Shown here in pieces: positions 500 to 24,669 of a stretch of 64,000 bases of DNA (position 1 is its first letter; each line of letters starts with the position of its first letter). The position numbers were made by a program, and so were the translations under genes. The stretch is taken from positions 930,001 to 994,000 of the forward strand of contig OX337241.1 in the NCBI GenBank assembly GCA_946965045.2, read 5' to 3'. The notes beneath the pieces were generated by a model that saw only the letters and a list, made by a program, of their open reading frames with translations, did no database searches and had not been told where the DNA came from. The DNA is from Epithemia pelagica (Eukaryota; Protista; Bacillariophyta).

Positions 500-885
500 T
501 GTTGAAACCAATTGCTCAGCCTGCAGCCTATGCAATGGCACGCTTGTTTCTCCTTACAAACTTCGTTTTCGCTATAGAGTGAGCTCTCTCAGCTCGTCGT
601 TAATCTAGTCTTAGCTTGATCTTCTACGACCTTCTCCGATTAGAATGTCCCTGTAACTTCTTGTCGTGGTCATTCCAGAGGCATTAACACCGGCGTCTGA
701 TCCGGCCATGTCTTTTCCTTTCTTGTTATCTTGTGGTTGACTTGTGTCCCCATCTGTATTGCTACTGCCGTTCCAGTATGACTTCTTGTCTCCCTGGTGG
801 ACAAGTTTAGTCTTAGTCGTACTCGGCGTTGCTTCCGAATGACCAGCTTCCGAATCGTTCGTCCGTCGGTCCTCGTGCTTCAACA
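500..885 (-). repeat. 5' LTR (386 bp)
   Basis: Minus strand starts TGTTGAA (885) and ends TTCAACA (500): canonical TG...CA ends with a 7 bp terminal inverted repeat, 16 nt before the gag ATG. Confidence 0.8.
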
Positions 886-7635: not shown

Positions 7636-8415
7636 TTATGGATGTGGTGGCTCTTCTGTATATTGTGAATAATCCGTGGCATGTTGAGATGCGTCTTCTG
7701 TGGTATGATTGGCCTTGCCTGCGCGTCGTTGTTTTTGCGCATGATGATGTTTCGTATCCACAGGTGCCACCACCATTTCGCCCTTGAAGTGAAAGAGCAT
7801 CAAGGCAAAGAGGGCCAACACCAAAAACAGACCAAAGCCTAAATTGGCAAACACTCGATTCGTCTGTGGATTGCCATGCGAATACCAAAAGAAGGTACCC
7901 GTCAAGATAAAGTTTTGATTGGCCAGGACTACCAATACACCCATAAAGAAGCCAATCGAAAAGGACGTGGGAAATCGCTTCAATACGAATGTTCCCAAAA
8001 TACCCAGCACCATATGTATAACTCCAGTAAACACAGCCGCTATCATCACCGCCCGAGAACCATCCGACGATTTAAGGTTGACCACTGAACAAAATAAAAT
8101 TCCATCCAACGCCACAAGAGAGACAAGAATACTTGAGTCAGCGACCTTCTTCCTTTTTTGCACTGTAACAGAGCAGCAGAGAATTGTTGAACAGAGAGGA
8201 CCAATACAATAGGACTTACTCTCAATTACCGCCACCACAAAGAACACGACTAATAGAATCAACGTCAAACCCCACGCTCGATGAATGGATGATTTTGGAT
8301 CGTCGGAGCATGATCGAAACAATCTAGTCAAGATGCTGTTGGTTGTGGCCTGTCCATAGTAGGACGCACCATCAGTCTCCGTCACCACACTGGCTGTAGA
8401 AGTGACTTTCGGCAT
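7636..8415 (-). CDS. Multi-pass membrane protein of unknown function
   Basis: 4-5 hydrophobic helices, first ATG at 8415, probable intron about 8085-8219 (GTAAGT...TTCAG). Confidence 0.7.
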   Translation of the reverse strand: MPKVTSTASVVTETDGASYYGQATTNSILTRLFRSCSDDPKSSIHRAWGLTLILLVVFFVVAVIESKSYCIGPLCSTILCCSVTVQKRKKVADSSILVSLVALDGILFCSVVNLKSSDGSRAVMIAAVFTGVIHMVLGILGTFVLKRFPTSFSIGFFMGVLVVLANQNFILTGTFFWYSHGNPQTNRVFANLGFGLFLVLALFALMLFHFKGEMVVAPVDTKHHHAQKQRRAGKANHTTEDASQHATDYSQYTEEPPHP

Positions 8416-8848
8416 CCTTGACAACTCTTTCGGTGGTGAACCAAGATTGCTACGCTGTTCAAGGAGGCTGCCGTTGGAGCTGTTGCTACGTTTGCGATGC
8501 CCTCTTCTACCACACCTTCCCAAATGACTCTTTCAATGTGTGAATTGAACTAGAGCAATGAAAGGTGAGGAGAAGCAGCACAAAGTCGAATGGTGACTTG
8601 CCGACTTCCCGTTTCCCAGTGTGTCTGTCTCGACTTCCAAGTCTCTCGTCTTGAATTCTTGTTGATGCAAGCCAAGAAGGAGAGGGAAACGGAAAAGAGT
8701 CGTTCGGTTATAACAGCGTTGAAAGGTTCACACCGCAGCACCATCCACACAATGACAGATCTTTACTAACGAACCGTAAAATGAGTCCAACGCCAGCTTT
8801 CGAAGACGCGGCCTCCTCGGAAAAGAGTTAATTTTCTATTATAGAATG

Positions 8849-10559
8849 CAGTATGAGGTCTTGATCCCGTTGAAGCGCCGACCGACCGCTATTCTTGGGA
8901 GAGAACGCCCAGCTGCCCCATTTTCAAAAACTAGAAGAATCATGCTCCTCTTTCTCCGAGAAGTACCACATGACTAATGACTATGGTTAAGCCAAAGTCT
9001 GCACCTGTACGTTCTGAACATGAGGAAATAACTAAGCACGTATTAGAAGTAGCATATTTGGTGCGGCGAATCCACAACAACGCGGTAGAGTCCTTCGCTG
9101 TTGGCATCTTGTCATTTCAGCTCTACAGTTGGCTCGCCTAGAAACGCGGTTCACGGTCAGATTGCTCCGAAGGTTACACTGTATTTGTACCTACCAACAC
9201 GACGTTGAACAGATTGGGTGCAGCAACCTTCTCAAAGCTAACCAGCGCTCCCTACAAGTCACATCTCAATGCTATTCTTTCATACCATGTCCTGGCATAA
9301 CAGTTGAGGCTGGTGCCATTCTGGAGGCTGGCAGACTCCGCGCGAAAACTCTCCAGGGTGAGGGCAGGTTTGAATCATCGAAAGCGCCAGAGTCGCGGAC
9401 GTTCGGGCATCTAATGAAATCGTCCAGGTTGCTAATAATGTTCTTTAACCAGACTTCGTATTTAAGTAAAGCCGCATGTTGATATTGGAAAGGAATCTGG
9501 ACTTAATTCATTGCTGAGTCCCCTGCCCGAAATTGAAAGCTTGAATGAAAGTTTCCTTGTAGCTGCGGTTGTGCTGCATCGGTTGCTCTTGATAAATGAC
9601 CCTCCTATAGCGGGGGACCCTTATTGTATGTTTATCAATTCGTTTTCTCGACCCGCCGACGTTTGGGCGAGTTCTCGGGGAAAAATTCACTGTACACCAC
9701 CGATATTTCACGATCATCACTCAGTTGATTCCAATGTATGTCAAATGCTTCATGTTCGCCATCTTCAACAGGCGAAATTCGAATAGATTCCCAGTTCTTG
9801 CAGCGTGCATAGCCGGTGAGGTTGTAACTTCCATAAACAGAGTGTTGTGTGGTAACAAGCGTTTTTTCATGCATGGAGGACAAGCCGTGTGGACAACACC
9901 TGCCCCCAGAAGTGTCCATTGTATCCGCTACTCTTATTTCAATTGCATTGAACAACTGATAACTCTGATACCGTTTGTTGTATTCGAGAAATTTCGAAAT
10001 AGCTCGGACGGAATTCTTAGTTTCATGAAGAGTCTTCGGGTCCTTGCTGACGTAGTCGATGATGATGCGTATTTGATGGCTGGTGGCGTAATGAAATATC
10101 AGATCAAATGCAAAGAAATCTGTGATACGGTATCCCTTCATTCGAATCACCGACATTGGGGGCGCTTGATCAAACACAGCAGCAATCGCCCGTAAAGGGT
10201 GATGTTCTGGTACGTCGCTAACACTCTTGTCGAATGGACGGGGCACTGTTCGGTAGAAGGTTTTTGTCTTGAGATCAATTCCGTTCTTTAGCGTCGCCAT
10301 GCGCTGATCAAACCACCCATAGCCTTGGTATTCCTCCGGTACCATTACATTGTTGTCCCAGTCTACATCCACTTCCGCGGCGGATGACTCACTGGACCGA
10401 TTCGGGGTGTACTTATGGGATATCCCTTCGGCATCCAAGCCATCCTCTTGGTCGATTGCACTGTAGTCGATTTCTTCCACTTCTTCTCCCATGGTGCCAT
10501 CGCAAACATTCGTCGCCATTAGGCAGAGTCCACCCGTTATGGGAAGGGAGCACTCCAGA
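8849..10559. repeat. Copy 1 of a 1.7 kb direct duplication (copy 2 at 19897-21588)
   Basis: Identical ends CAGTATGAGG...CACTCCAGA. By eye about 8 substitutions plus a 19 bp insertion near 9137 in this copy. Confidence 0.97.
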
Positions 10560-10917
10560 ATCACCGTCCCTTCATTGGGATCCTTGGTCTTATCGGTGGG
10601 CAAGTAAATACCCGACGCCGTTTGGACTTCTTTCGGTGCCCGTTTTACCAAAACGCGATCGCCCAAAGGAGCCAAACTACGAAACAAGGCCTGTTGAAGA
10701 AATCATACAAACAGCACCAGCTTCAGTGAGACGGCAAAGCAAAGCAAAGCGAACCACGAGACACAAAGATCCAAAAGATACACTCGCAATCAATGGCCTG
10801 ATGATGAAACAGTCTCGATTCCAAAACGACCCTGATCCTCTATGCCCTCTCTATCGTTGAAAACCCTACAGAATGAACATTCAAAGGCAATGGCAGACTT
10901 ACGCGTGTTCTAAACAT
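9635..10917 (-). CDS. Chimeric ORF: mitochondrial chaperonin-10 N-terminus fused in frame to a PLD/Nuc-like nuclease (356 aa)
   Basis: Exon 1 10903-10917 (MFRTR), intron 10691-10902 (GTAAGT...CAACAG), then ALFRSLAPLGDRVLVKRAPKEVQTASGIYLP..DPNEGTVI (GroES signature). At 10559 it joins the duplicated segment encoding HEKTLVTTQHSVYGSYN. Confidence 0.8.
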
Positions 10918-11085
10918 GGTGACGGCGGATTCACAGTCGACGCAGAAAGAGTTCAATGAATGGAAAAGATGGAATGATGCAAGACGAAATCCAGACCCAC
11001 CGTAGGCAGACGGACAGACGGTGCTGAATTCGTCTGAGTTCAGTATGAACGGGACGGGTGGGCCGTAAGGCTTGGGGTCTGGGGT

Positions 11086-11100
11086 GGGAATTTCCAGAAA
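11086..11100. promoter_or_regulatory. Putative heat-shock element upstream of the Hsp10 start
   Basis: GGAatTTCcaGAA fits GAAnnTTCnnGAA with one mismatch, about 170-185 bp upstream of ATG 10917. Confidence 0.45.
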
Positions 11101-11817
11101 GACCAGCTGTACCGAAAACGGACGGACAGTAGAGTAAAAAGTACAATTGAGCAAACATGGCGGTTGATGAAACGGTTAAATATATAGGGCAATGATATAG
11201 CAATGATTATTTTAATGGTCAGTCATGGTATGATTTGGAGGTGCACCTCCAACCGCGTAAAATGTGAGTGGAGACTCACCCTTGACGTATCGTTAGTAAT
11301 AATGTAAGACTCCCAACCATCAATCTATGACCTCTACAAGCCATTTTTCTGTCGAAGCCTGTAATTTGACGTTGAATGACGTTACGAGCTCCCGGCTCAC
11401 GATCGCACCACTGCATAATAGCACCACCATCACCATGAACAGTAAAGCCGCAGTGCACCTCCAACGAAAGGTGCTAGCACTCCTCCAACCATCAAGCATG
11501 CCTCAGAATGGAGTGTACCGTGAAGGTTGAAAAGGGCGGCGATGAGTTGGATAGTTTGATCGAGCTACAACTACATTTGCAATGTCTTCCAGTTTGATGA
11601 GTGATGAGGGAAAGTCGTGACAAGAATATCAACAATGGAGACAGATAACGATGGAAAGATAAAGATCACAACGGAGGAACGACGGAGAAAGATTCAATTC
11701 GGGTCAAGGAATGATGGACGACCCGGAAATTGAAACACGGCAATCAGACGGGTGGTTTTCAAGCATCAAGGAAGTATCTGTCAGAAGACGACGACACAGC
11801 TTCTGTTGTCGGCGACA

Positions 11818-13149
11818 ATGGTGGCGGTGCTGCTGCTGCTTCGAGTGGATACCGTGGAGCTGTGGTGGCAGTCGAAGATCGCGTGGTCGTTCTTCTCCTT
11901 CCGCCATGCGACAAACGTTGAGTCACACAGCGTCATTATTGACGAGCGGCCACAACGACCACGACTGGACGAAAAATGGTCGTGCCCGAGGCTGTGCCCA
12001 ATCTACGAATGCAACAATCACGGAAACAAGCACGGAGGGTTGCATCCAAACAACCACCATCACCAGCGACAACAGCACACCAGCAAGAAGAAAAAGAAGA
12101 ACCAACAGGACATTCCAGAGAATCGTTCCTCGAGTACTGCTAGTCGCTTTCATGTTTGGAATTATGCCGAGAAACGACCTCCAACACATGCACATCCAGA
12201 ACGTGATTTAGAGGAGGACGACGACAAGCCCCATTCCGTTGACTCCAGGATTGTTTCTTCCACAGCCTCGTATTTGACCTCGTGTCCGACGGCTGCCTTT
12301 ACCATTGGTTATGGTGTCGGAACCTGGCCGCATCATTTGCCGACAAGCAGCAGCCGCAGGACAAGCAGGAGCAGTACAGATCGTGGGCGGGGAGACGAAA
12401 CGGATGCCGAAACAGGATCATTGTCCTGGTCCTTTTCGTCCGAGAATCCTCCTATCAGCCATGGCAGCCATGTGAGTACAAAAACGACTCTTCTTTCTCG
12501 CTCGCAAGTGGTGCAACAATTACCACCCTGTGAATTTGTGCAGTTTCAATGTTGGTCTCGCCTGCAAGCACCGACTGGTGCGGCGACACAGGTGGCTGTC
12601 GTGCGGGCCGTGACACTGGCGTCGTCGTCGTGGGTGAGGAGTATTACTGCCATGGGTGGGAAACGACGAGGCAATCGCCATTCAAATAAGTACTACAATC
12701 ACAAAACAGACACTCGTACAAACCATGATCCTCCCTTGGGTTGGTCCTGGTTGTTTCAAACCTTTGGTGTCGAACAATTGCACGTGCAAGCCTTGGATCG
12801 AGCCTTGCCCAGCAATCTGCGCAACATTGTGTTGGATCGCTTGCAACAAACGGGTACCACGGCCCAAAACAAAAAAGCCTTGATGCGAATCCTCCACGAG
12901 TTGCCAAAAAAACCACAAGGAAAGGACTCCACAGACCTGGCCTGGTCCTTTCCAGAGTACTACTCGTCCCGTAATCGAAGAATGGTGGTGAACCAAACCG
13001 AGCCGAACCAGCAGCTGCAGCGTCACCCTAAGAGGTGGTGGTGGAACAAGAACCCGCATCACAACAAGATGTGGTGGCATGGCAAAAAGGACAAGACGAG
13101 CCTCGATCATTCTCCTTCTTTTTCTTTTAGCAACAATGATCCAAAATGA
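11818..13149 (+). CDS. Hypothetical low-complexity protein with hydrophobic N-terminus
   Basis: Long ORF with H/Q/K/S-rich tracts and no recognisable domain; start uncertain. Confidence 0.45.
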   Translation: MVAVLLLLRVDTVELWWQSKIAWSFFSFRHATNVESHSVIIDERPQRPRLDEKWSCPRLCPIYECNNHGNKHGGLHPNNHHHQRQQHTSKKKKKNQQDIPENRSSSTASRFHVWNYAEKRPPTHAHPERDLEEDDDKPHSVDSRIVSSTASYLTSCPTAAFTIGYGVGTWPHHLPTSSSRRTSRSSTDRGRGDETDAETGSLSWSFSSENPPISHGSHVSTKTTLLSRSQVVQQLPPCEFVQFQCWSRLQAPTGAATQVAVVRAVTLASSSWVRSITAMGGKRRGNRHSNKYYNHKTDTRTNHDPPLGWSWLFQTFGVEQLHVQALDRALPSNLRNIVLDRLQQTGTTAQNKKALMRILHELPKKPQGKDSTDLAWSFPEYYSSRNRRMVVNQTEPNQQLQRHPKRWWWNKNPHHNKMWWHGKKDKTSLDHSPSFSFSNNDPK

Positions 13150-14038
13150 TGAGGAGTATATGAGGTCGGTTCGTATGGTCAACGACCCTCCTCAGCAGGA
13201 CCTTGTGGTTGTTTCTTCATGGTTCGCCCATGGCAAAACAATCCAAAATCAATCATTGGCCGCCATCATGCTGACCATGTTCTCTCTCTCATTCCCCCAT
13301 AATTTGGCGGCGATAATGCGTAGATACCCCTCTCTCTTGTGGTTTTGGTTGGGGAACAGAAAAGTGCGGGGCAAAAACATCGCTACCATTCGCTATCGTC
13401 AGCGACTACTGGTAGCGACTCCACTCCACTCGTATTCGGTGGAAGTGGAATCGGCATGGGGACACGAGCGAATGCAAGGTGCTTCTCGAGCTACCCTTTC
13501 CTCATCAATAGTAATCGTAGGATTTCGCCCTCGTTTGGATGTTTGCGGGATAGATAAGTTCTGGCGAGCTTAGTAGTTTGGAACCAGTCCAACCATTCAT
13601 GGTTCCCTTGCTATGAACTAGAGGAATGATGTCGCATTCAAAGCAGGGAAATTTTGCAAACATCACATAATCTCTAGTTCATGTGGGCTCATCCACTACC
13701 ACTAATACCTCTCTATCTAGTTGAGGCGAGTCCTTCATCTCCCTGTCTACGACAATGGTAGTGGCGGCATTCAAAGCGATGAATATCATGTTGTGATTTT
13801 TGCCAATGATAGTGACTATTTGTGTTTGAAGGCATTCATGGGCAAATTGGATGAGGCCGAGGACGTACTTGGACATTGCTGGAATGTAAGGTATTACCCT
13901 CTTATCCATCAACAAGGAAACCTATACTCAACTTTTTCAAAATGCTTGTACGGCAGGAACATGAAGACAAACAAAAACATGGTTACTTCTGAATTAGATT
14001 CAACATAGTAGATCCTTCGACTGTGGCTGACCTAGCAC

Positions 14039-14959
14039 TTAGGAGAGACCAAACACCATCATGGCCATTCCAATCCCAAACACCAGTGAGAACGGATTCA
14101 TGGACAGTGTCACACTCGCACCCGACAATAAGGAGGTCTGGTTGTTGTTGGCAGACAAGGATGACTGGAACAAGTTCTCAAATTCCGTCCGTGTAAAACA
14201 AGTATCGGCTCCACTCTCCTCTTGAATGTGTTGGGCCAATTCGGGACTGACTACCGAAGAACCACCAAAAAACAAGTTGACAAAATCCACCACATTGTCT
14301 GCCGTGATACAGAGATCATCCAGAGCGGCTTCACTGCCCTCGGCGCCAGTTGCAACACCGGTGCAGGCCACTACATCGTCGAACAAAAACTTTCCTGATT
14401 TTCCGGCCGGGAGCTGGATATGCTCCATTTCCCAAGTATCAATGGAACCATTCTTGTTGGTATCAATAAATTCAATCGCATCTTGGACCATTGAATCCAT
14501 ATCCAGTCTGTCTTGACTTGCTGAATCATCCACAAGGCCAGACAACAATGACGTGTAGAGAGACCGGAGTATATCGGTCGAGACCGTTTGGCCAGTCTCC
14601 ATACGAGCAACAAGGTCTTCCAAGGTTTGATCCGCTTGTGTCAAAGAAGCGCCCTTGTTTGGCACGTGTGATTGGCCTCCTTGCTGAGACGTGAGGAGAA
14701 AGCACTTGTTGTTGTGGTTCGTTTCTTCTGGAACAGCCGTCAAGGTACGCCGAAGGTCCAATTTTCCGACCACCAATCCAACAAGCAGCAACAAAATCGC
14801 AATCCCAATAAAGACGAGAAAGAATTTGGGCCGCGATTCTTCAGGACTTGGTTGTACGTTCGTGGCGATGTAGAAGAAATTTGTACCATCAGGGAACGGA
14901 ACCGGAACCGGAACACCGCCATTCAAAAGATTGAGATTGCTGGCATCGAATTCGAACAC
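14039..14959 (-). CDS. EF-hand-containing membrane-associated protein, 5' end unresolved
   Basis: EF loop DTNKNGSIDTWE, an N-proximal TM helix and a hydrophobic GPI-like C-terminus. The ORF opens at GTG with no early ATG. Confidence 0.55.
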   Translation of the reverse strand: MFEFDASNLNLLNGGVPVPVPFPDGTNFFYIATNVQPSPEESRPKFFLVFIGIAILLLLVGLVVGKLDLRRTLTAVPEETNHNNKCFLLTSQQGGQSHVPNKGASLTQADQTLEDLVARMETGQTVSTDILRSLYTSLLSGLVDDSASQDRLDMDSMVQDAIEFIDTNKNGSIDTWEMEHIQLPAGKSGKFLFDDVVACTGVATGAEGSEAALDDLCITADNVVDFVNLFFGGSSVVSPELAQHIQEESGADTCFTRTEFENLFQSSLSANNNQTSLLSGASVTLSMNPFSLVFGIGMAMMVFGLS

Positions 14960-14973
14960 AGACCCGACACACG

Positions 14974-15790
14974 ATGTCCGAATTCCTCGTGTGGATTGGG
15001 ATGGTGTGGGTTTGGTCGATCATCGTCGTCCTTGCAATGGCGGCGTACTCGTCGACCCGATACCATTCGCAAGAAAAAGTCATCCTTATCTTGACTGTCG
15101 CACAGTCCGACGGATTTGCATTATGGCGGGGGTGCTTGTTCGTGGTTGGGTATTACCTTGCATTCCTGGGTGGTTCATTATTTGCATTGGTCTTTCCGGT
15201 CCAGTTTTGCTGCCGTTTTTTGAGTGCCGCCGTCGGATTCTTGGTCTCGACCTTGCTCTTTGCCGCAGTCTTGAACGGATTGGGACATCATCATCCCAAG
15301 TGTTTGGCTGGCGTGGACTTTTATGAAGCAGATTACTTTACCGATGCCTTTGTGTTGATGCCTTTGTTTCGAGTTGGACCACCTTTAGTAGGGTACGTGC
15401 ACACACACGCACAAGACACTAGGGACATTTGCCAAGAGGTGGTTGTCATGTTTGTGTTGTATCCATGATTCCATGTGTTTTCTCATACTGTCGTTGTGCA
15501 CACATGTGTGCTGCTGTGGGATTGGTGGTATCTGTATAATACCAGGTGGGATATGGGTTGATTTACAGTGGTATTAGTGCCGATGAACACGATATTCGCA
15601 AATGTACAGGCATGACCATTGTCGTGACCTTGTAGGCCTTTGTCTTTCCAAGGTCACACGAACCCAATCCGTGGCCCAAGTAGCCTTCTTTCGTACACCC
15701 ATTGTCATTCGATATGGATCCATGTTCGAGGTGTTGCTTGTTTGCAAGGTTTGTTCCTCATCTTGCGTAAATGCGACAATGGCATAAACA
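14974..15790 (+). pseudogene. Multi-pass membrane protein gene, apparently degraded at the 3' end
   Basis: Hydrophobic 164 aa ORF with a splice donor near 15392. Downstream exon-like segments carry stops or frame changes. Confidence 0.35.
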
Positions 15791-16056
15791 AAAGCTATGG
15801 TTTGTAAAAACTATCTAGGGGTAACTAGGGCAAAAGCTACTCGTGCTATCTTTCGATTTTCGGGTCCGGTCGCACATGCGTATAATGAGCGCAATCGCAA
15901 AATCGCGTTTTGATAGAATGGCCTGCGTGAAAGCGCGATGCGATTTGGAGGGAATTTTGGTGAGCATGAGCACCAAAATCGCGCTTTTGCGCGTCGATAG
16001 AATGGGCCCCGCATTGCATGCGATCACGCGTGACTCACTTTCATGCTTGGGGGTAA

Positions 16057-16648
16057 GGGCTGGGTAAGCCGATCCATGTTCGGCTAAGTAGGTTCAGTAC
16101 AAAAGCTAAGTAGCGTACATAAAATCCCATAGTACACGTCATACCTGAAATGGTGGGAAGTCCGAAAAAATGCAAAAACACTCCACGATGACGGCGAGAT
16201 CCGTTGATGCCGCATGCATTTACCGATGCATCGCATCAACATCCTACTACTGTAAGTTGTTTGAGTTTGCTAGTATTACTGTGTTCTGCAGCTACAGAAG
16301 ATTTGTCGCGTTGGATCAAAAGGTATACTGGTGATGTAATCCAAAAACCTTCCTAACTCATTCATTTCTCAACGGTGACTGAATCAAATTGAAACCATAG
16401 TTGCTCTAGTATTCAAGAGTATTATTCTAAAAGTGATTCAGTTAGGCTCAATTATCCATGAAGTTATTGCCATGGGGGTGATTTCTTCGACCATTGTCGA
16501 GTGATGGTTTCCGGATTGCACTGTTTCTCGTGGCAGCATGTTTTCGATTTGTGACCATTCGCCCCACTTGTTACAGTGATGAAAATAGTACTACGTAGCT
16601 TAATGTACTGAGCCTACTTAGCCGAACATGGATCGGCTTACCCAGCCC
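16057..16648. mobile_element. Non-autonomous DNA transposon (MITE, 592 bp)
   Basis: 45 bp TIRs GGGCTGGGTAAGCCGATCCATGTTCGGCTAAGTAGG(T/C)TCAGTACA at 16057-16101 and 16604-16648 with one mismatch. No internal ORF. Flanks TAA | TTTT, no TSD. Confidence 0.9.
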
Positions 16649-16754
16649 TTTTGTGGCTCCTGAATACGACGGATACTGAACTCAGCCGTCCTATACCGCC
16701 TTGGCGGTTTCAATCCCCAAGAACGGCCCCGAAACCTACGTCATCTTTAAAGTT

Positions 16755-17888
16755 TCAAATGAACGTTTTAAATTCAAATTCACCGACTCGGCATTCCCGG
16801 ATCTCCATGATGAGTCGTGCGCGCATGGGGACTCTTCCAACTGCCAACCACACGCACCCGATGCACAAATTTGTCGAGGCGTTGTTGCCGCAACCACGGG
16901 TGCCAGGGTGCAAGTCGGTTGGACCATGGCGTTTTGTCGAGGAGCCGACCAACGGCACCAAAATTGCGATCTGAAACACTTTCGCCTCACCATTTTCAAT
17001 CTTCATCTGAACCAGATTCACCACTGCTCCAAACACCTTGTGATGCCCATCCAGATCTCCTCTGTATTTCTCCTTTAAGATATTGTAATGTTTCAGTAAA
17101 TTGTTGACAGTTTCATGTCTCGCCCTGGCATCAGCCATCATCTTGTCTTGATAGTCATTTCTTCCAGTAGGTGTGACAAAGTAGCATCCAGAATCGTTGT
17201 AACCACCATCAGCAATCACTTTCTCATTCGGTAGTAGCTCTTGAACAAGCCAGTCTCTGGCAATCCGTAGGTCTGGCCAAGCGCCACAAGGGAATGCACC
17301 ATTCCACCACACTATCCAGCCAGTTTTCAGGCAGATTCCCACCTCATACCTCACACCTGCTCCCTTAAACTTGTGCGAGTACCATTTTGGATCAAAAGGT
17401 GACGGCTCCAAAATCCTGAAGTCAGTACCATCCAAACTAATGAAACAGACCTGTCCAGGTACACTACAATCAAACCTATTGTCCCATACAATCTGTTATA
17501 AGAACAACAGCAATGGTCAGATATGAGGAGGACGACTTCATGGCAAATTCATGTAGGGCCATGTACTTACATAATTAAGACCACTATACAACAAATTTAC
17601 AAACACTTTGACCCACTTCCTGTAGGTCTTCCTCGTTGTTTTGGCTATTGAGACCATAACATCCTCTGTAGCATAGACTTTCAGAAAAGCCAGTGTCCAC
17701 AACAAATGACGAGGCGATGCACCTTTGGGCAATGAACTGTCCAGTTCATCCCACACATGAACACAGAGCAAAGGAGACATTCCAAAGTAAGAACGAAAAG
17801 CACGTGAGAAATCAAGTGAGTGTGAGTGTCTTGCTCTACCAAGCATTGGCAGAGCCAAGTTGATGAATGTTCGTTGTGTCACCAACAT
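16755..17888 (-). CDS. Harbinger-like DDE transposase (DDE_Tnp_4 type), two exons
   Basis: Exon 17571-17888, intron 17493-17570 (GTAAGT...ATAACAG), exon 2 with SLDGTDF, KWYSHKF, IADGGY, RARHETVN. The C-terminal about 70 aa after VFQI look unrelated. Confidence 0.88.
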
Positions 17889-18225
17889 GGTGGGAGAAAA
17901 TCGCTTTGGAAAATTTATGTTTGCTCAGTGTGTGTCGCGATGCTGACCACACCTTTACTCTGATCTCGGTCTGTCTGTGTGTAGTACTGTCAGTTCATTG
18001 GAACAGGTTTTTTGGAATTTCATCACGTTCATTTGATTGGCTGGTCAGTTGAGCAGCGACACTAAACTTTGTACTGTTCTACATATAGTGACCAATTCGA
18101 ATTCGTGTCCGGTCATTGGAACCGGCCTGGAACGGTGCAGAAATTGATTCAAGTGTTTTCATTCAAAAACTGGAATTTCTGAATGGCCCTACCTCGCCAA
18201 CATCCTATTACTTTCTACATCTTAA

Positions 18226-18448
18226 GCGACCCACATATTGCCCTTATCTTGGGTTAACTGTGGGTCGCTTGATTATATCATTTGAACCACTAGAAAGTGT
18301 CCTGGGTCGGTTTTGAAAAAACAACCTGGCTCGAAAAAATCGACCCAGCTTGTTTTTTTAAAACCGACCCAGGACACCTTATAAGTGCCCAATTCACTTG
18401 GACGAACGACCCACGGTTGACCCAAGGTAAGGGCAATACGTGGGTCGC
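18226..18448. repeat. Compound palindrome rich in CGACCCA heptamers
   Basis: Outer arms 18226-18267 / 18407-18448 (42 bp, 4 mismatches) and inner arms 18297-18324 / 18350-18377 (28 bp, 1 mismatch). Confidence 0.9.
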
Positions 18449-18641
18449 ACTACTTTCAGAATTGGAGCCAAATTGGGCATGGCCTCCTCGATTGAAAAAT
18501 GGAGTCCATGATGAAAACCGACCCAGTCCGGATTTTGGTGAACTGTTTTTAGGGTCATAATTAGTTTTCGTGCGAACAGACCAGTCTGGTTTTGCACTCC
18601 CTCGCGCTTTTGTTTTACGTACTAATAGTACCTATACTCCG

Positions 18642-19704
18642 ATGACCGGGTCTGGCCGCAACACTTTGGGCGAGGGTGCCCTACTTTCGTGGGATTCAAA
18701 GTCAAAAGATGCCGAATTCCTTGACAAAATCGTGTCAGAAGGCTTGATTCTGGAGAGCGCCACACCCAAATCTGTGTGGTTGGAACACGCTGTTTTCCAA
18801 AAGTACAAATTGGAATCATTCAGGTCGGCTCTCAACAAAGCCAAAAGAAAATACCAAGTCCACTTGAAGGATCAACATGAGAGAGAGACTGGTCATGAGT
18901 TGTTGGGTCGTGGTGAGACGGCCCCATCTATGGATGGAAAGGTAAGGAACCCCAATGATGGAGATCTCAAACCAGCTCCTTCTTTGTTTGGGTCGTCCAA
19001 AGGACAAGGTAAGTGCCAGTGTACACTGTTTGTTTGATTGTTGAGTCACTGTCCTTACCTGTTGTGGTTTATTGTCTTTTATGACCAGGTGTTGCTGCCA
19101 AGGTCGCTCCTGAGTCTGTTGTCAGTGACGATGCTATGGTGAAGAAAAGGGCGGCAGGATCCATGCCATTACAGGAGACACTACAGGTACAACTACAACA
19201 AAAGAGGAAAAAGACAAATGAAGAAGACAGTGGTAATGACATGATGAGGAATTGGGAGCCTCCTCATGTCTTGACACAGTGGGTCGACGACAAGAAACAG
19301 CGTCATTTGGTGATTTTGGTGGTGTTGCCTACAGGTATTGCACATGAAGACACAACAAATTGCTTGATTGAAGTGGATCCGAGCCAGCTACAGGTACATG
19401 TGAAGGTAATTTGGCCTGACAACGCAACTCATATCCATTATCTAACCCAACAGAGTGGCATGTCGAGGAGAAAAACCTACGAATGAAACTTGCTTTGGAA
19501 GACGCCATGAATCAGATGCGAAAAAGAGAAACAGACTTTGTCAGGTCAAAGTTTTCTCTTTCTCTTCCTTTCATGGTCCAAAGCAGGTTCGACTACGAAT
19601 TTATGTACGACACAACAAACGGATTCAGAGCGTTGTTGATTTCCCTACATGAGCCGGACGCACAATTTGAAGGCGGCATGAAGCACAAGATGGTGCGTCT
19701 GTAA
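18642..19704 (+). pseudogene. Transposon accessory ORF: N-terminal helical putative DNA-binding domain plus C-terminal alpha-crystallin/HSP20-like domain; one frameshift
   Basis: ATG 18642, intron 19009-19088 (GTAAGT...ACCAG), frameshift near 19475-19485 joining the 19136 and 19483 ORFs. Confidence 0.65.
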
Positions 19705-19896
19705 ATAAATGTAGTATGATTTGGGGCGGTTGCAAAAACCGGGTGGTGGTGGGCCTAAATCTTTCTATTAGTTCTCTATTTGTCCATGTTCATAGTTTAT
19801 GCTATAGTACATCGATTAAGCGTTCTGGTCGTGTTCCGCTTTGTAGTCAGACTTTGCCTGGAATGACAGCGAGCTGCTCAGGATTACCCCAGCTCC

Positions 19897-21588
19897 CAGT
19901 ATGAGGTCTTGATCCCGTTGAAGCGCCGACCGACCGCTATTCTTGGGAGAGAACGCCCAGCTGCCCCATTTTCAAAAACTAGAAGAATCATGCTCCTCTT
20001 TCTCCGAGAAGTACCACATGACTAATGACTATGGTTAAGCCAAAGTCTGCACCTGTATGTTCTGAACATGAGGAAATAACTAAGCACGTATTAGAAGTAG
20101 CATATTTGGTGCGGCGAATCCACAATAACGCGGTGGAGTCCTTCGCTGTTGGCATCTTGTCATTTCAGCTCTACAGTTGGCTCGGTCAGATTGCTCCGAA
20201 GGTTACACTGTATTTGTACCTACCAACACGACGTTGAACAGATTGGGTGCAGCAACCTTCTCAAAGCTAACCAGCGCTCCCTACAAGTCACATCTCAATG
20301 CTATTCTTTCATACCATGTCCTGGCATAACAGTTGAGGCTGGTGCCATTCTGGAGGCTGGCAGACTCCGCGCGAAAACTCTCCAGGGTGAGGGCAGGTTT
20401 GAATCATCGAAAGCTCCAGAGTCGCGGACGTTCGGGCATCTAATGAAATCGTCCAGGTTGCTAATAATGTTCTTTTACCAGACTTCGTATTTAAGTAAAG
20501 CCGCATGTTGATATTGGAAAGGAATCTGGACTTAATTCATTGCTGAGTCCCCTGCCCGAAATTGAAAGCTTGAATGAAAGTTTCCTTGTAGCTGCGGTTG
20601 TGCTGCATCGGTTGCTCTTGATAAATGACCCTCCTATAGCGGGGGACCCTTATTGTATGTTTATCAATTCGTTTTCTCGACCCGCCGACGTTTCGGCGAG
20701 TTCTCGGGGAAAAATTCACTGTACACCACCGATATTTCACGATCATCACTCAGTTGATTCCAATGTATGTCAAATGCTTCATGTTCGCCATCTTCAACAG
20801 GCGAAATTCGAATAGATTCCCAGTTCTTGCAGCGTGCATAGCCGGTGAGGTTGTAACTTCCATAAACAGAGTGTTGTGTGGTAACAAGCGTTTTTTCATG
20901 CATGGAGGACAAGCCGTGTGGACAACACCTGCCCCCAGAAGTGTCCATTGTATCCGCTACTCTTATTTCAATTGCATTGAACAACTGATAACTCTGATAC
21001 CGTTTGTTGTGTTCGAGAAATTTCGAAATAGCTCGGACGGAATTCTTAGTTTCATGAAGAGTCTTCGGGTCCTTGCTGACGTAGTCGATGATGATGCGTA
21101 TTTGATGGCTGGTGGCGTAATGAAATATCAGATCAAATGCAAAGAAATCTGTGATACGGTATCCCTTCATTCGAATCACCGACATTGGGGGCGCTTGATC
21201 AAACACAGCAGCAATCGCCCGTAAAGGGTGATGTTCTGGTACGTCGCTAACACTCTTGTCGAATGGACGGGGCACTGTTCGGTAGAAGGTTTTTGTCTTG
21301 AGATCAATTCCGTTCTTTAGCGTCGCCATGCGCTGATCAAACCACCCATAGCCTTGGTATTCCTCCGGTACCATTACATTGTTGTCCCAGTCTACATCCA
21401 CTTCCGCGGCGGATGACTCACTGGACCGATTCGGGGAGTACTTATGGGATATCCCTTCGGCATCCAAGCCATCCTCTTGGTCGATTGCACTGTAGTCGAT
21501 TTCTTCCACTTCTTCTCCCATGGTGCCATCGCAAACATTCGTCGCCATTAGGCAGAGTCCACCCGTTATGGGAAGGGAGCACTCCAGA
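19897..21588. repeat. Copy 2 of the 1.7 kb direct duplication
   Basis: About 99.5% identical to 8849-10559 by manual comparison, lacking the 19 bp insertion. Confidence 0.97.
20664..21548 (-). CDS. Single-domain phospholipase D-superfamily (Nuc/Zucchini-like) protein, 294 aa from first ATG
   Basis: IRMKGYRIT...IRIIID strand pattern, HEK(x4)T..GSYNLT catalytic motif and downstream NWES. Acidic N-terminal extension; true start uncertain. Confidence 0.75.
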   Translation of the reverse strand: MATNVCDGTMGEEVEEIDYSAIDQEDGLDAEGISHKYSPNRSSESSAAEVDVDWDNNVMVPEEYQGYGWFDQRMATLKNGIDLKTKTFYRTVPRPFDKSVSDVPEHHPLRAIAAVFDQAPPMSVIRMKGYRITDFFAFDLIFHYATSHQIRIIIDYVSKDPKTLHETKNSVRAISKFLEHNKRYQSYQLFNAIEIRVADTMDTSGGRCCPHGLSSMHEKTLVTTQHSVYGSYNLTGYARCKNWESIRISPVEDGEHEAFDIHWNQLSDDREISVVYSEFFPENSPKRRRVEKTN

Positions 21589-21907
21589 CTCTCGAGAGTT
21601 CGAAAGCCAATTCTAACGTCGGTGCTCCCTGTCAACAAAAGAGTGTGTTGCTGACGGTTCAACTGTTCCTCCTATACACATACATCCTAGCAACACTTTC
21701 CATGATTGCCATACGGTATACTCCTACTCCTAGGAGTAGCTAGGTAGTACTCCTAGTAACACCAATGGAGGAGTACTTTTTCGACGTCGATCTTTTTTTT
21801 ACGCCTACTCTTTAGCCCTATAGTCTTTTCCTACTGCTTTCTACGTGAGATCCTACGGTGTCGCTCTTACGATGACCAACCGCCGTTCTCCTTCCAGCTC
21901 TGGAGGC

Positions 21908-23247: not shown

Positions 23248-24669
23248 TCAGAATTCGAGATTGAGTTGCGATGTAAATGTGGCAAATTCAACGGAGCCAT
23301 TGAATGTGATTTCTTCTGGAGACTCGATTGCGGCTTCCAGATTGTTTTGGATGGCGTCGATGTCTCCCTTAGTGATTGATGTGTTCGACGATGGGTCGAC
23401 GTGTCGAAAATCCTGATTCCGAATCATGTTCGCGGACATTCCGGCAGTCCATTCCATTACCTGCGGCCTTATATAGCGGAGGAGGGCCGCCGATGACCAT
23501 CGACCAAGAATCATTATTTTGAGGACGGATGTCCCAGCCAAGAACAGTGCCATCGCCGCTCCCGAACGCAGTGAGTGCGTCCCGATGTCCAAGGGTCGAT
23601 AGCCGAATCGATTTATGCCGCCACCACTTGCGCAAGATTCCCGCAGTATTTTGATGGTGTCTTCGGCGCGAAAGAATCTCGGAGTTGGTTGTTTGCCGGC
23701 CGCCGCCACCTGGGGGTCAAACCAACAATTCACCGGTGTGTCGGGGCTCGCGTCAGGTCGATAATGCAAAATCCGTCGAATTATTCGACCCCAGAGACAA
23801 ACTGGGCAAAGTATGTTGTCGTTGGTTTTGCTTTGCGTCCTGGTCTGAAACTTCTCGCCATTCTTCTGTGCGATGAAGGTCACCGAAACGAAATGGGCTC
23901 GTGACTAGAACTCGGGGTGGGTCGGGTCGATTGGGGTCCGCAATTCGTCGTTACACCGGAATGTTATGTTGCCGATTGTGAGTAATCGGGTCTTCCCTCG
24001 TTGCTTGACGGTGGAGTATTCACAGCTCCTACACGCGGTGAAGTACGCCGCGAGTGCCAAGTCCGCGTTGCATGCCTTAAACGAAGAGAGGTCTTTCGGA
24101 TTTCGGCCGTCAGCGTCGCTCCTCGTCAATTCAATCCACATGTGGCGCAAGTGTTTTGGTGTCGCCGCCTTCTGCCGCTTCTCTTCTGGATCGAGGTGTT
24201 TCCATGCTCGTTTCAGTTGTTCGACGAGGGGGTGGAGCCTGTTGCAGCCCGTGATGTGGCAGGGGCTCTGCCTGTCGTGATACCTGAACTTCTGTGCCAG
24301 GTTGCCAAGGGCTTTCTCAATAGTGCTCGCTTGTAGATCGTCCTTAGCCCCACGGCTGAAAGCACCGTCACGGAGTCGCTGCAAGAACGTGCAGACAATC
24401 TGTGATCGGTGCCGAATGGACGGGATGCCGTCCAAAAAGGGGTCGCTTGTGAGTCCGAAGAGTTCGAGATGGATGATCCATCTTCGCCAGACTCTGTCTT
24501 GGTCCTCGTGGGAGGATTCGACTCTCCCGAAGAAGATCCTTGCCGCACTGGTGCGACCAAGGAGAGCCACGATTTTATCTCTGTTGGTAATTGATATATC
24601 TGAAAATTGCTTGGAACCTGTGAGGGGTACAAAGAGCGGATTTTTGCAGTTAGAACTGAGTCGCAACAA
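23248..24669 (-). pseudogene. Tyrosine recombinase (Ngaro ORF3) with an in-frame TAG at 23905-23907
   Basis: FTACRSCEY (catalytic R), HSLRSG and GRWSS..LRY motifs. The two track ORFs are in the same frame. Overlaps the end of ORF2 by 457 bp. Confidence 0.9.

Follow-up and report, generated by a model that had tools for sequence, protein, structure and literature searches.

Structure of the Chimeric Open Frame

The DNA stretch analyzed here, referred to as the window, comprises 64 kb of contig OX337241.1 (positions 930,001 to 994,000, assembly GCA_946965045.2) from the diatom Epithemia pelagica. It carries a candidate chimeric gene in which the 5' part of Hsp10, the gene of the mitochondrial co-chaperonin, is joined to a complete gene encoding a protein of the phospholipase D (PLD) type. 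All coordinates refer to the window, and the chimera lies on its minus strand. The open reading frame (ORF) occupies positions 9635-10917, with the start codon ATG at 10917-10915 and the stop codon at 9635-9637. After splicing it would encode 356 amino acids, which comprise Hsp10 residues 1-49, 13 codons read through from the leader of the PLD gene, and the full PLD-like protein. This PLD gene belongs to the first of two copies of a PLD unit in the window.

The copied Hsp10 exon 1 (10903-10917; ATG TTT AGA ACA CGC, encoding MFRTR) is the same in a relative (L001) and in the intact Hsp10 gene (locus L012). It is followed by a copied intron of 212 nt with GT..AG ends (10691-10902), which differs from the intact gene at one position, 10710, and whose 212 nt were skipped by an RNA-like contig, which stems from the near-identical intact gene. 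The copied part of exon 2 (10560-10690) begins at 10690 with ALFRSLAPLGDRVLVKR...NEGTVI and holds the first 44 codons of this exon (ALFRS...NEGTVI). It also carries a diagnostic base at 10565, which on the plus strand is C in the chimera and A in the intact Hsp10 gene. The sequence switches from Hsp10 to the repeated PLD segment exactly at 10559/10560 and the frame is unbroken. The microhomology at this junction is 1 nt, a T at 10559 that is common to both source sequences. From the junction, 13 leader codons (LECSLPITGGLCL) read open to the PLD gene's own ATG at 10519. The possibility that the PLD unit is an intron, spliced from a donor at ACG|GTGATT, was rejected, since the relatives and the intact gene read through in one exon.

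The chimeric ORF matched the Pfam profile Cpn10 (PF00166) with an E-value of 1.2e-8 and a score of 35.3 bits (cut-off 21.1). The match spanned profile positions 2-40 of 93 only, short of a complete domain with its ~93 residues and beta-barrel. Over the part common to the chimera and the intact Hsp10 protein (P0045), 39 of 39 residues were identical. On the same DNA, a gene call of the public assembly (L013, 6407-7447) gave a product of 346 amino acids with a Cpn10 match. As in chimeras born by duplication, the novel junction is supported by reads and both of its parents were identified, namely the Hsp10 gene at L012 and the PLD unit. A rearrangement did create an in-frame chimeric ORF. A search among JGI metagenome contigs gave no match to the junction sequence.

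Verification of the Junction

Contigs of four public runs of the same organism were placed on positions 8600-11400; X1, X2, and X3 are DNA runs, while X4 is RNA-like. Each of the DNA runs contained a 66-nt unitig over 10530-10595, with a depth of 123 in X1, 155 in X2, and 70 in X3. This unitig spans 10559/10560, extends to the last k-mers containing base 10565, and is as long as a chimera-specific path in a k=31 graph should be. In X1 the depths of the left flank, the PLD unit, the junction, and the Hsp10 5' part were 130, 213, 123, and 229, respectively, and in X2 they were 153, 290, 155, and 300. These mean contig depths are near 1:2:1:2 and, with caution, fit a fixed (homozygous or clonal) rearrangement in which the PLD unit and the Hsp10 5' part are each present twice. 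The loose ends of the read contigs at 10559 lead into the intact Hsp10 gene and into the flank of PLD copy 2. The same structure is present in a public contig-level assembly (ENA ERZ21939226, contig ctg1346l), whose segment L013 corresponds to window 17081-1 at 99.965% identity. The initial annotation of this stretch, made from the sequence alone, had named a lack of reads across 10559 as a sign of misassembly. Junction unitigs in three DNA runs and the public assembly dispel this concern, and the junction is real DNA.

The window and ctg1346l differ at six bases (8884, 9010, 9386, 14174, 14863, and 14979). Two of them, 9010 and 9386, are sites that separate PLD copy 1 from copy 2, and ctg1346l and the read contigs show the letter of copy 2 at both. 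This pattern suggests polishing cross-talk between the PLD copies, or gene conversion.

The Intact Hsp10 Gene

At 10559 one branch of the read contigs continues on the coding strand with GCAGTGGGACCAGGAGAACGCGATGTGACG, which translates to AVGPGERDVT, and the relatives show the same residues after NEGTVI. A domain-restricted protein search retrieved P0045, a protein of 93 amino acids that is identical to the window over the common residues and complete to ...ILGKFD; its continuation in the intact Hsp10 reads ...NEGTVIAVGPGERDVT. The locus of P0045, L012, has the same exon 1 and intron, and its exon 2 is complete. On ctg1346l, L012 overlaps L013 with 100% identity, and the ATG of the intact Hsp10 gene lies 24,859 bp from the ATG of the chimera in the same orientation, ~14 kb outside the window on the side of base 1. 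Genes for myosin and aspartic protease occupy the remaining 20 kb of L012, which has only a Copia long terminal repeat (LTR) in common with the window. The intact Hsp10 gene and the chimera are therefore not alleles.

In X4, a contig of 1,167 nt with a depth of 581 begins at ~10935 and skips the 212-nt intron, which marks the run as RNA-like. At 10559 this contig goes into the intact Hsp10 form, and it has one differing letter in exon 2, which fits base 10565. An intact, spliced, and expressed Hsp10 gene is thus present on the same contig as the chimera. It had been noted initially that the 3' half of Hsp10 was not nearby, and that the chimera might be a dead Hsp10 allele. The 3' half is indeed absent from the 64-kb window by tblastn, and from the DNA below 8849 by three-frame reading as well, but a complete Hsp10 gene lies 24.9 kb away on the same contig. 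The search for an intact allele or paralog that had been proposed thereby found a paralog, P0045 at L012, and the Hsp10 part of the chimera is a partial paralogous copy rather than a dead allele.

The Copied Hsp10 Fragment and Its Upstream Region

The Hsp10 part of the chimera belongs to a 725-bp partial copy of the Hsp10 locus, which is ~99.4% identical to its source and comprises 370 nt from upstream of the gene, followed by exon 1, the intron, and 132 nt of exon 2. Over 729 nt, fragment and source are separated by 4 substitutions and a single 1-nt indel. The copy matches L012 in two parts, L012 9647-10117 with window 11029-10559 (99.6% identity) and L012 9393-9649 with window 16969-16712 (98.8%). 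Since the two matches are contiguous in L012, with a 3-nt overlap, the copy was later split by an insertion of 5,682 bp (11030-16711), which is bordered by a 3-bp target duplication, AAT, at 11027-11029 and 16712-16714. The insertion cuts the copied upstream region 112 nt before the ATG, leaving a proximal part of 112 nt (10918-11029, minus strand), in which the Hsp10 mRNA contig has its 5' end, and a distal part of 258 nt (16712-16969, minus strand).

The insertion site is empty in L012 and in read contigs, and in one of these contigs the 27 nt after 11029 recur exactly at 16715-16741. The left end of the insertion is high-copy, with a depth of 2,000-26,000 against ~130, or 15-200 times single-copy, and many contigs from different flanks enter the insertion at 11026-11029. 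No transposase domain was found in the 5,682 bp, and a search for Helitron or inverted-repeat signatures gave only a 13-nt subterminal inverted match (11034-11046 and 16673-16685). The insertion is an unclassified mobile element or composite. It carries ORFs, including one for a weakly EF-hand-like membrane protein at 14039-14959.

The site TTTCTGGAAATTCCC at 11100-11086, which has one mismatch to a three-unit heat-shock element (HSE), lies inside the insertion. It was the only site with at most one mismatch, and ~0.12 such sites are expected by chance in the scanned stretch. At the same threshold, no HSE was found in the 960 nt upstream of the intact Hsp10 gene or in the upstream DNA of the relative in L001. 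A heat-shock promoter, that is, three alternating nGAAn units in the gene's own promoter, was thus not found. The initial annotation had described an intact Hsp10 5' structure with an HSE-like motif. Exon 1, the 212-nt intron, and the start of exon 2 agree with this description, and the coordinates, the junction, and the length of 356 residues given there are also correct; the HSE-like motif sits in the insertion, however, and the promoter is cut at -112. The proposed stress inducibility is therefore not supported, since the motif belongs to the later insertion and not to the Hsp10 promoter. A search of positions 8000-14000 with Rfam found nothing.

The Duplicated PLD Unit and the Harbinger Piece

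PLD copy 1 (8849-10559, minus strand) is 1,711 bp long and consists of a 40-nt leader, a coding sequence with its own ATGs at 10519 and 10492 and the stop codon shared with the chimera, and 786 nt of 3' flank. Copy 2 (19897-21588, minus strand; coding sequence 20664-21548) keeps its presumed native upstream DNA at 21589-21756, after which a transposon nest begins. By self-comparison the two copies are 98.4% identical, and they differ by 8 substitutions in 1,692 nt and one 19-nt indel. No other repeat touched the chimera region in the self-comparison of the window. The divergence of the PLD copies and that of the Hsp10 fragment from its source are equal within error, which supports one recent event.

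Between the copies lies a Harbinger-type element of ~2.9 kb (16970-19896), which abuts the Hsp10 fragment and whose right boundary was inferred. A DDE_Tnp_4 match was found in the ORF 16755-17435 on the minus strand. This domain ends near 17010, ~13 codons before the junction with the Hsp10 fragment, so the element seems truncated there, on the 3' side of its transposase. The ORF is itself chimeric, its last ~70 codons (16969-16755) reading copied Hsp10 upstream DNA. Along the direction of transcription the order is presumed native PLD upstream DNA, PLD copy 2, the Harbinger piece, the Hsp10 fragment, PLD copy 1, and then ordinary genes encoding a membrane protein, a purple acid phosphatase, and a DEAD helicase. 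Two direct PLD copies thus enclose foreign pieces, with unique DNA outside, and this arrangement indicates a tandem duplication with filler DNA at the breakpoint.

The 3' flank of the PLD unit contains, on the opposite strand, a decayed fasciclin-like reading (9129-9482, plus strand, repeated at 20149-20511), which was recognized by eye; Pfam gave no match to it at an E-value of 0.01.

Family, Fold, and Conservation of the PLD Partner

A word search gave 27 relatives of the PLD protein with lengths of ~263-365 amino acids, including proteins of Amphora coffeiformis (84% identity) and Seminavis robusta. The shorter relatives (263-300 amino acids) begin with M..(P/I)DYS, aligning with the second ATG of the window gene at 10492, and DNA similarity to the relatives starts at ~10502. 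In several samples of one marine diatom, the PLD gene lies between the gene of Bap31 and a 2OG-Fe oxygenase gene. The starts of the relatives, the onset of DNA similarity, and this ordinary host-gene setting indicate that the duplicated unit is a complete gene with a leader of only 40 nt. This diatom gene is conserved and free-standing, and it starts at an ATG of its own. By exact look-up, the two native PLD products were not on record.

The Pfam profile PLDc_2 scored 20.6 bits on the chimera, below its gathering cut-off of 27, and some of the relatives carry a precomputed match to PF13091. A profile of the PLD family matched Nuc of Salmonella (1byr) with an E-value of 2.4e-5 and matched Zucchini weakly. 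The AlphaFold model of the PLD protein had a predicted local distance difference test (pLDDT) score of 72 and a predicted template modeling (pTM) score of 0.73. With Foldseek, FAM83 (FAM83B), Zucchini, NucT, and Nuc were retrieved at a probability of 1.0 and E-values of about 1e-5, while the Seminavis homologue in the ESM Atlas led to PLDc_2-type clusters only. The earlier assignment of the C-terminal part to the PLD/Nuc/Zucchini group was thus borne out by both profile and fold.

In the H-x-K motif (MHEK), H217 and K219 are kept in at least 90% of the 27 family members and align to the H-D-K of Nuc. Where the HKD motif (H-x-K-x4-D) has its Asp, the family alignment shows a nearly invariant Thr (T223). 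In the G-S-x-N motif, G230, S231, and Y232 are invariant and N233 is nearly so. The first ~52-55 residues of the PLD protein are acidic, disordered, and of low model confidence, and its C-terminus carries a conserved basic patch, here SPKRRRVEK, which is likely a nuclear signal. The acidic N-terminal (P/I)DYS motif and the C-terminal K/R patch are shared by all of the diatom relatives (27/27). Together these proteins seem to form a conserved and as yet undescribed branch of the single-HKD PLD proteins in diatoms, with Thr in place of the HKD Asp.

The single-HKD PLD nucleases Nuc (1byr), NucT (6ehi), and Zucchini/MitoPLD (4ggj, 4gel) work as homodimers. The diatom protein resembles them in its one PLD-fold domain, the His and Lys of H-x-K, and the G-S-x-N motif. 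It differs from them in the Thr at the Asp position, the acidic disordered N-terminus, and the basic C-terminal tail, and its activity is only predicted. Unlike Zucchini, it is without an N-terminal membrane anchor.

In X4, a PLD contig covers 8991-10350 at a depth of 606, and its letters mix both copies. It ends 5 nt before an internal ATG (MVPEEYQGYGW...), and this end could be an internal transcript start or a break in the graph.

Origin of the Rearrangement

The locus is most likely a young rearrangement in which the PLD unit was duplicated in tandem around mosaic filler DNA, and its candidate chimera, of unproven function, is a by-product rather than a working gene. The duplication of the 1.7-kb PLD unit left foreign DNA between the copies. 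The filler consists of the 725-bp Hsp10 copy, from 24.9 kb away, and the truncated Harbinger element of ~2.9 kb. The new junction links the middle of Hsp10 exon 2 to a site 40 nt before the start codon of the PLD gene, the frame being kept by chance. The join may have been made by non-homologous end joining with filler DNA, or by replication template switching of the type of microhomology-mediated break-induced replication (MMBIR) or fork stalling and template switching (FoSTeS). A microhomology of 1 nt and an Hsp10 template only 25 kb away fit end joining with templated filler or template switching, and we infer the repair mechanism from these two features. The structure of the DNA, where it came from, and the existence of an intact, expressed Hsp10 gene are shown by the data. 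The 5.7-kb repeat was inserted afterwards, 112 nt upstream of the copied Hsp10 ATG. An origin as a retrocopy was rejected, because an intron and 370 nt of upstream DNA are retained in the Hsp10 piece and the PLD unit is without a poly(A) end.

Two other accounts of the structure were weighed against this duplication. The junction falls exactly at the end of a repeat, where assemblers err, so we considered whether the assembly is at fault or one haplotype carries a broken Hsp10 allele. This is extremely improbable, because three short-read DNA runs contain junction-specific unitigs with flank-like depth, the structure recurs in a separate contig-level assembly, and the intact Hsp10 gene lies on the same contig in a non-allelic position with flanks unrelated to the window. 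Alternatively, the Hsp10 fragment could be cargo moved alongside the Harbinger element in a Pack-type capture, as it abuts this element at 16969/16970 in a transposon-rich region. We consider this very improbable. The Harbinger element is truncated on the side of the fragment, just past the DDE domain, there are no terminal inverted repeats around the fragment, and the source gene is only 25 kb away. Moreover, the direct PLD repeats that flank the whole insert are the signature of a tandem duplication and not of cut-and-paste transposition.

Several observations weigh against a tandem duplication that left a silent by-product. For the Harbinger piece, arrival by a template switch is indistinguishable from a later transposition with truncation. 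No synteny of the PLD flanks that would fix the ancestral copy was found in the relatives. The depth figures are one mean per contig, and those of X3 fit the 1:2:1:2 pattern poorly. As for expression, neither the PLD copies nor any of the Hsp10 splice signals are damaged, so the chimera could be expressed, and X4 has no contig over 10351-10558, the interval that holds both PLD ATGs. X4 consists of the contigs of one RNA-like run, and since contigs lose rare variants, the lack of a chimera-specific contig among them cannot prove absence.

Expression and Possible Function of the Chimera

If the 112-nt promoter stub fires, the transcript would be spliced like that of Hsp10 and translated from the Hsp10 ATG into the 356-residue fusion, because this ATG lies upstream of the PLD ATGs and in frame with them. 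An uncleaved Hsp10 targeting segment and mobile loop would then precede an otherwise nuclear-looking PLD nuclease. The N-terminal 30 residues of the chimera contain 7 K/R against 2 D/E and an amphipathic stretch, and Hsp10 uses an uncleaved N-terminal targeting signal (PMC8724765). With this basic, partly amphipathic N-terminus and the known uncleaved signal, mitochondrial import of the fusion is conceivable. The 49 Hsp10 residues cannot form the GroES barrel. In X4 only the intact Hsp10 form was seen at the branch, which is weak negative evidence and points to low or absent expression of the chimera. The expressed mitochondrial nuclease proposed in the initial annotation was thus not supported.

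A working new gene would use the stub promoter, maybe with the HSE-like site of the insertion, to make a spliced mRNA for a dimeric mitochondrial nuclease or lipase of the PLD type. The reading frame is unbroken, the splice sites do not differ from those of the working Hsp10 gene, 112 nt of promoter and the transcript start region are retained, and the H-x-K and G-S-x-N motifs are conserved; the basic, amphipathic N-terminus and the uncleaved Hsp10 signal also speak for it. We regard such a gene as unlikely, since X4 shows no chimera-specific contig though the Hsp10 mRNA is deep, the promoter is cut at -112, and the single HSE-like site, with its one mismatch and its chance expectation of ~0.12, is foreign to the native promoter. 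The event is also very young (~0.5% divergence), and the acidic disordered N-terminus and conserved basic C-terminal patch of the PLD part suggest a nuclear rather than a mitochondrial protein. Finally, an in-frame join without a stop codon arises by chance in roughly one of six cases (~1/3 x 0.5), so the retention of the frame is not evidence of selection. A bolder version, which we find quite improbable, holds that expression of the chimera does occur, perhaps in response to stress by way of the HSE-like site of the insertion, that the chimera sends a normally nuclear PLD nuclease to mitochondria, and that it is one of several independent cases in this diatom of nuclease genes gaining the N-termini of mitochondrial proteins. 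If true, it would mean recurrent selection for organelle-directed nucleases.

The locus has counterparts among the chimeric genes from tandem or partial duplication surveyed in Drosophila yakuba and D. simulans (PMC5460883, PMC4069613) and among the fusion genes of rice (PMC9199173). As in these fly and rice chimeras, one gene's promoter and 5' coding part meet another gene at a young duplication breakpoint, with direct repeats on either side of the new junction; most chimeras of this kind are recent, and their function is uncertain. It differs from them in that the 5' partner is not a neighbouring gene but a 725-bp templated copy from 25 kb away, accompanied by a transposon piece, and in that a whole gene, start codon included, serves as the 3' partner. 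With mitochondrial Hsp10/Cpn10 (GroES family, PF00166) the chimera shares exon 1, the intron position, and the first 49 residues with the targeting segment and mobile loop, but the beta-barrel core is missing and the product cannot be a co-chaperonin. The chimera is a young candidate gene of a known kind with unproven function, and its unusual detail is the templated 5' partner from 25 kb away.

The locus provides a base-resolved example of candidate gene birth in a diatom, in which a promoter, an intron, and a targeting peptide were placed before a complete enzyme gene. The two parental genes remain intact, and the promoter is already being dismantled by a later insertion. To our knowledge, such snapshots are well known in flies and rice and rarely documented in diatoms. 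Only if the fusion turned out to be expressed and imported would the locus by itself bear on an open question.

Neighboring Mobile Elements

Next to PLD copy 2, the transposon nest contains an ORF on the minus strand (23248-23883) with tyrosine-recombinase-like motifs (HSLRSG..., LGRWSS..., and ...RY). At the other end, a Copia element with a gag-pol call of 1,646 amino acids spans the start of the window (window 500-885), and its second LTR lies ~5 kb outside, between the window and the intact Hsp10 gene.

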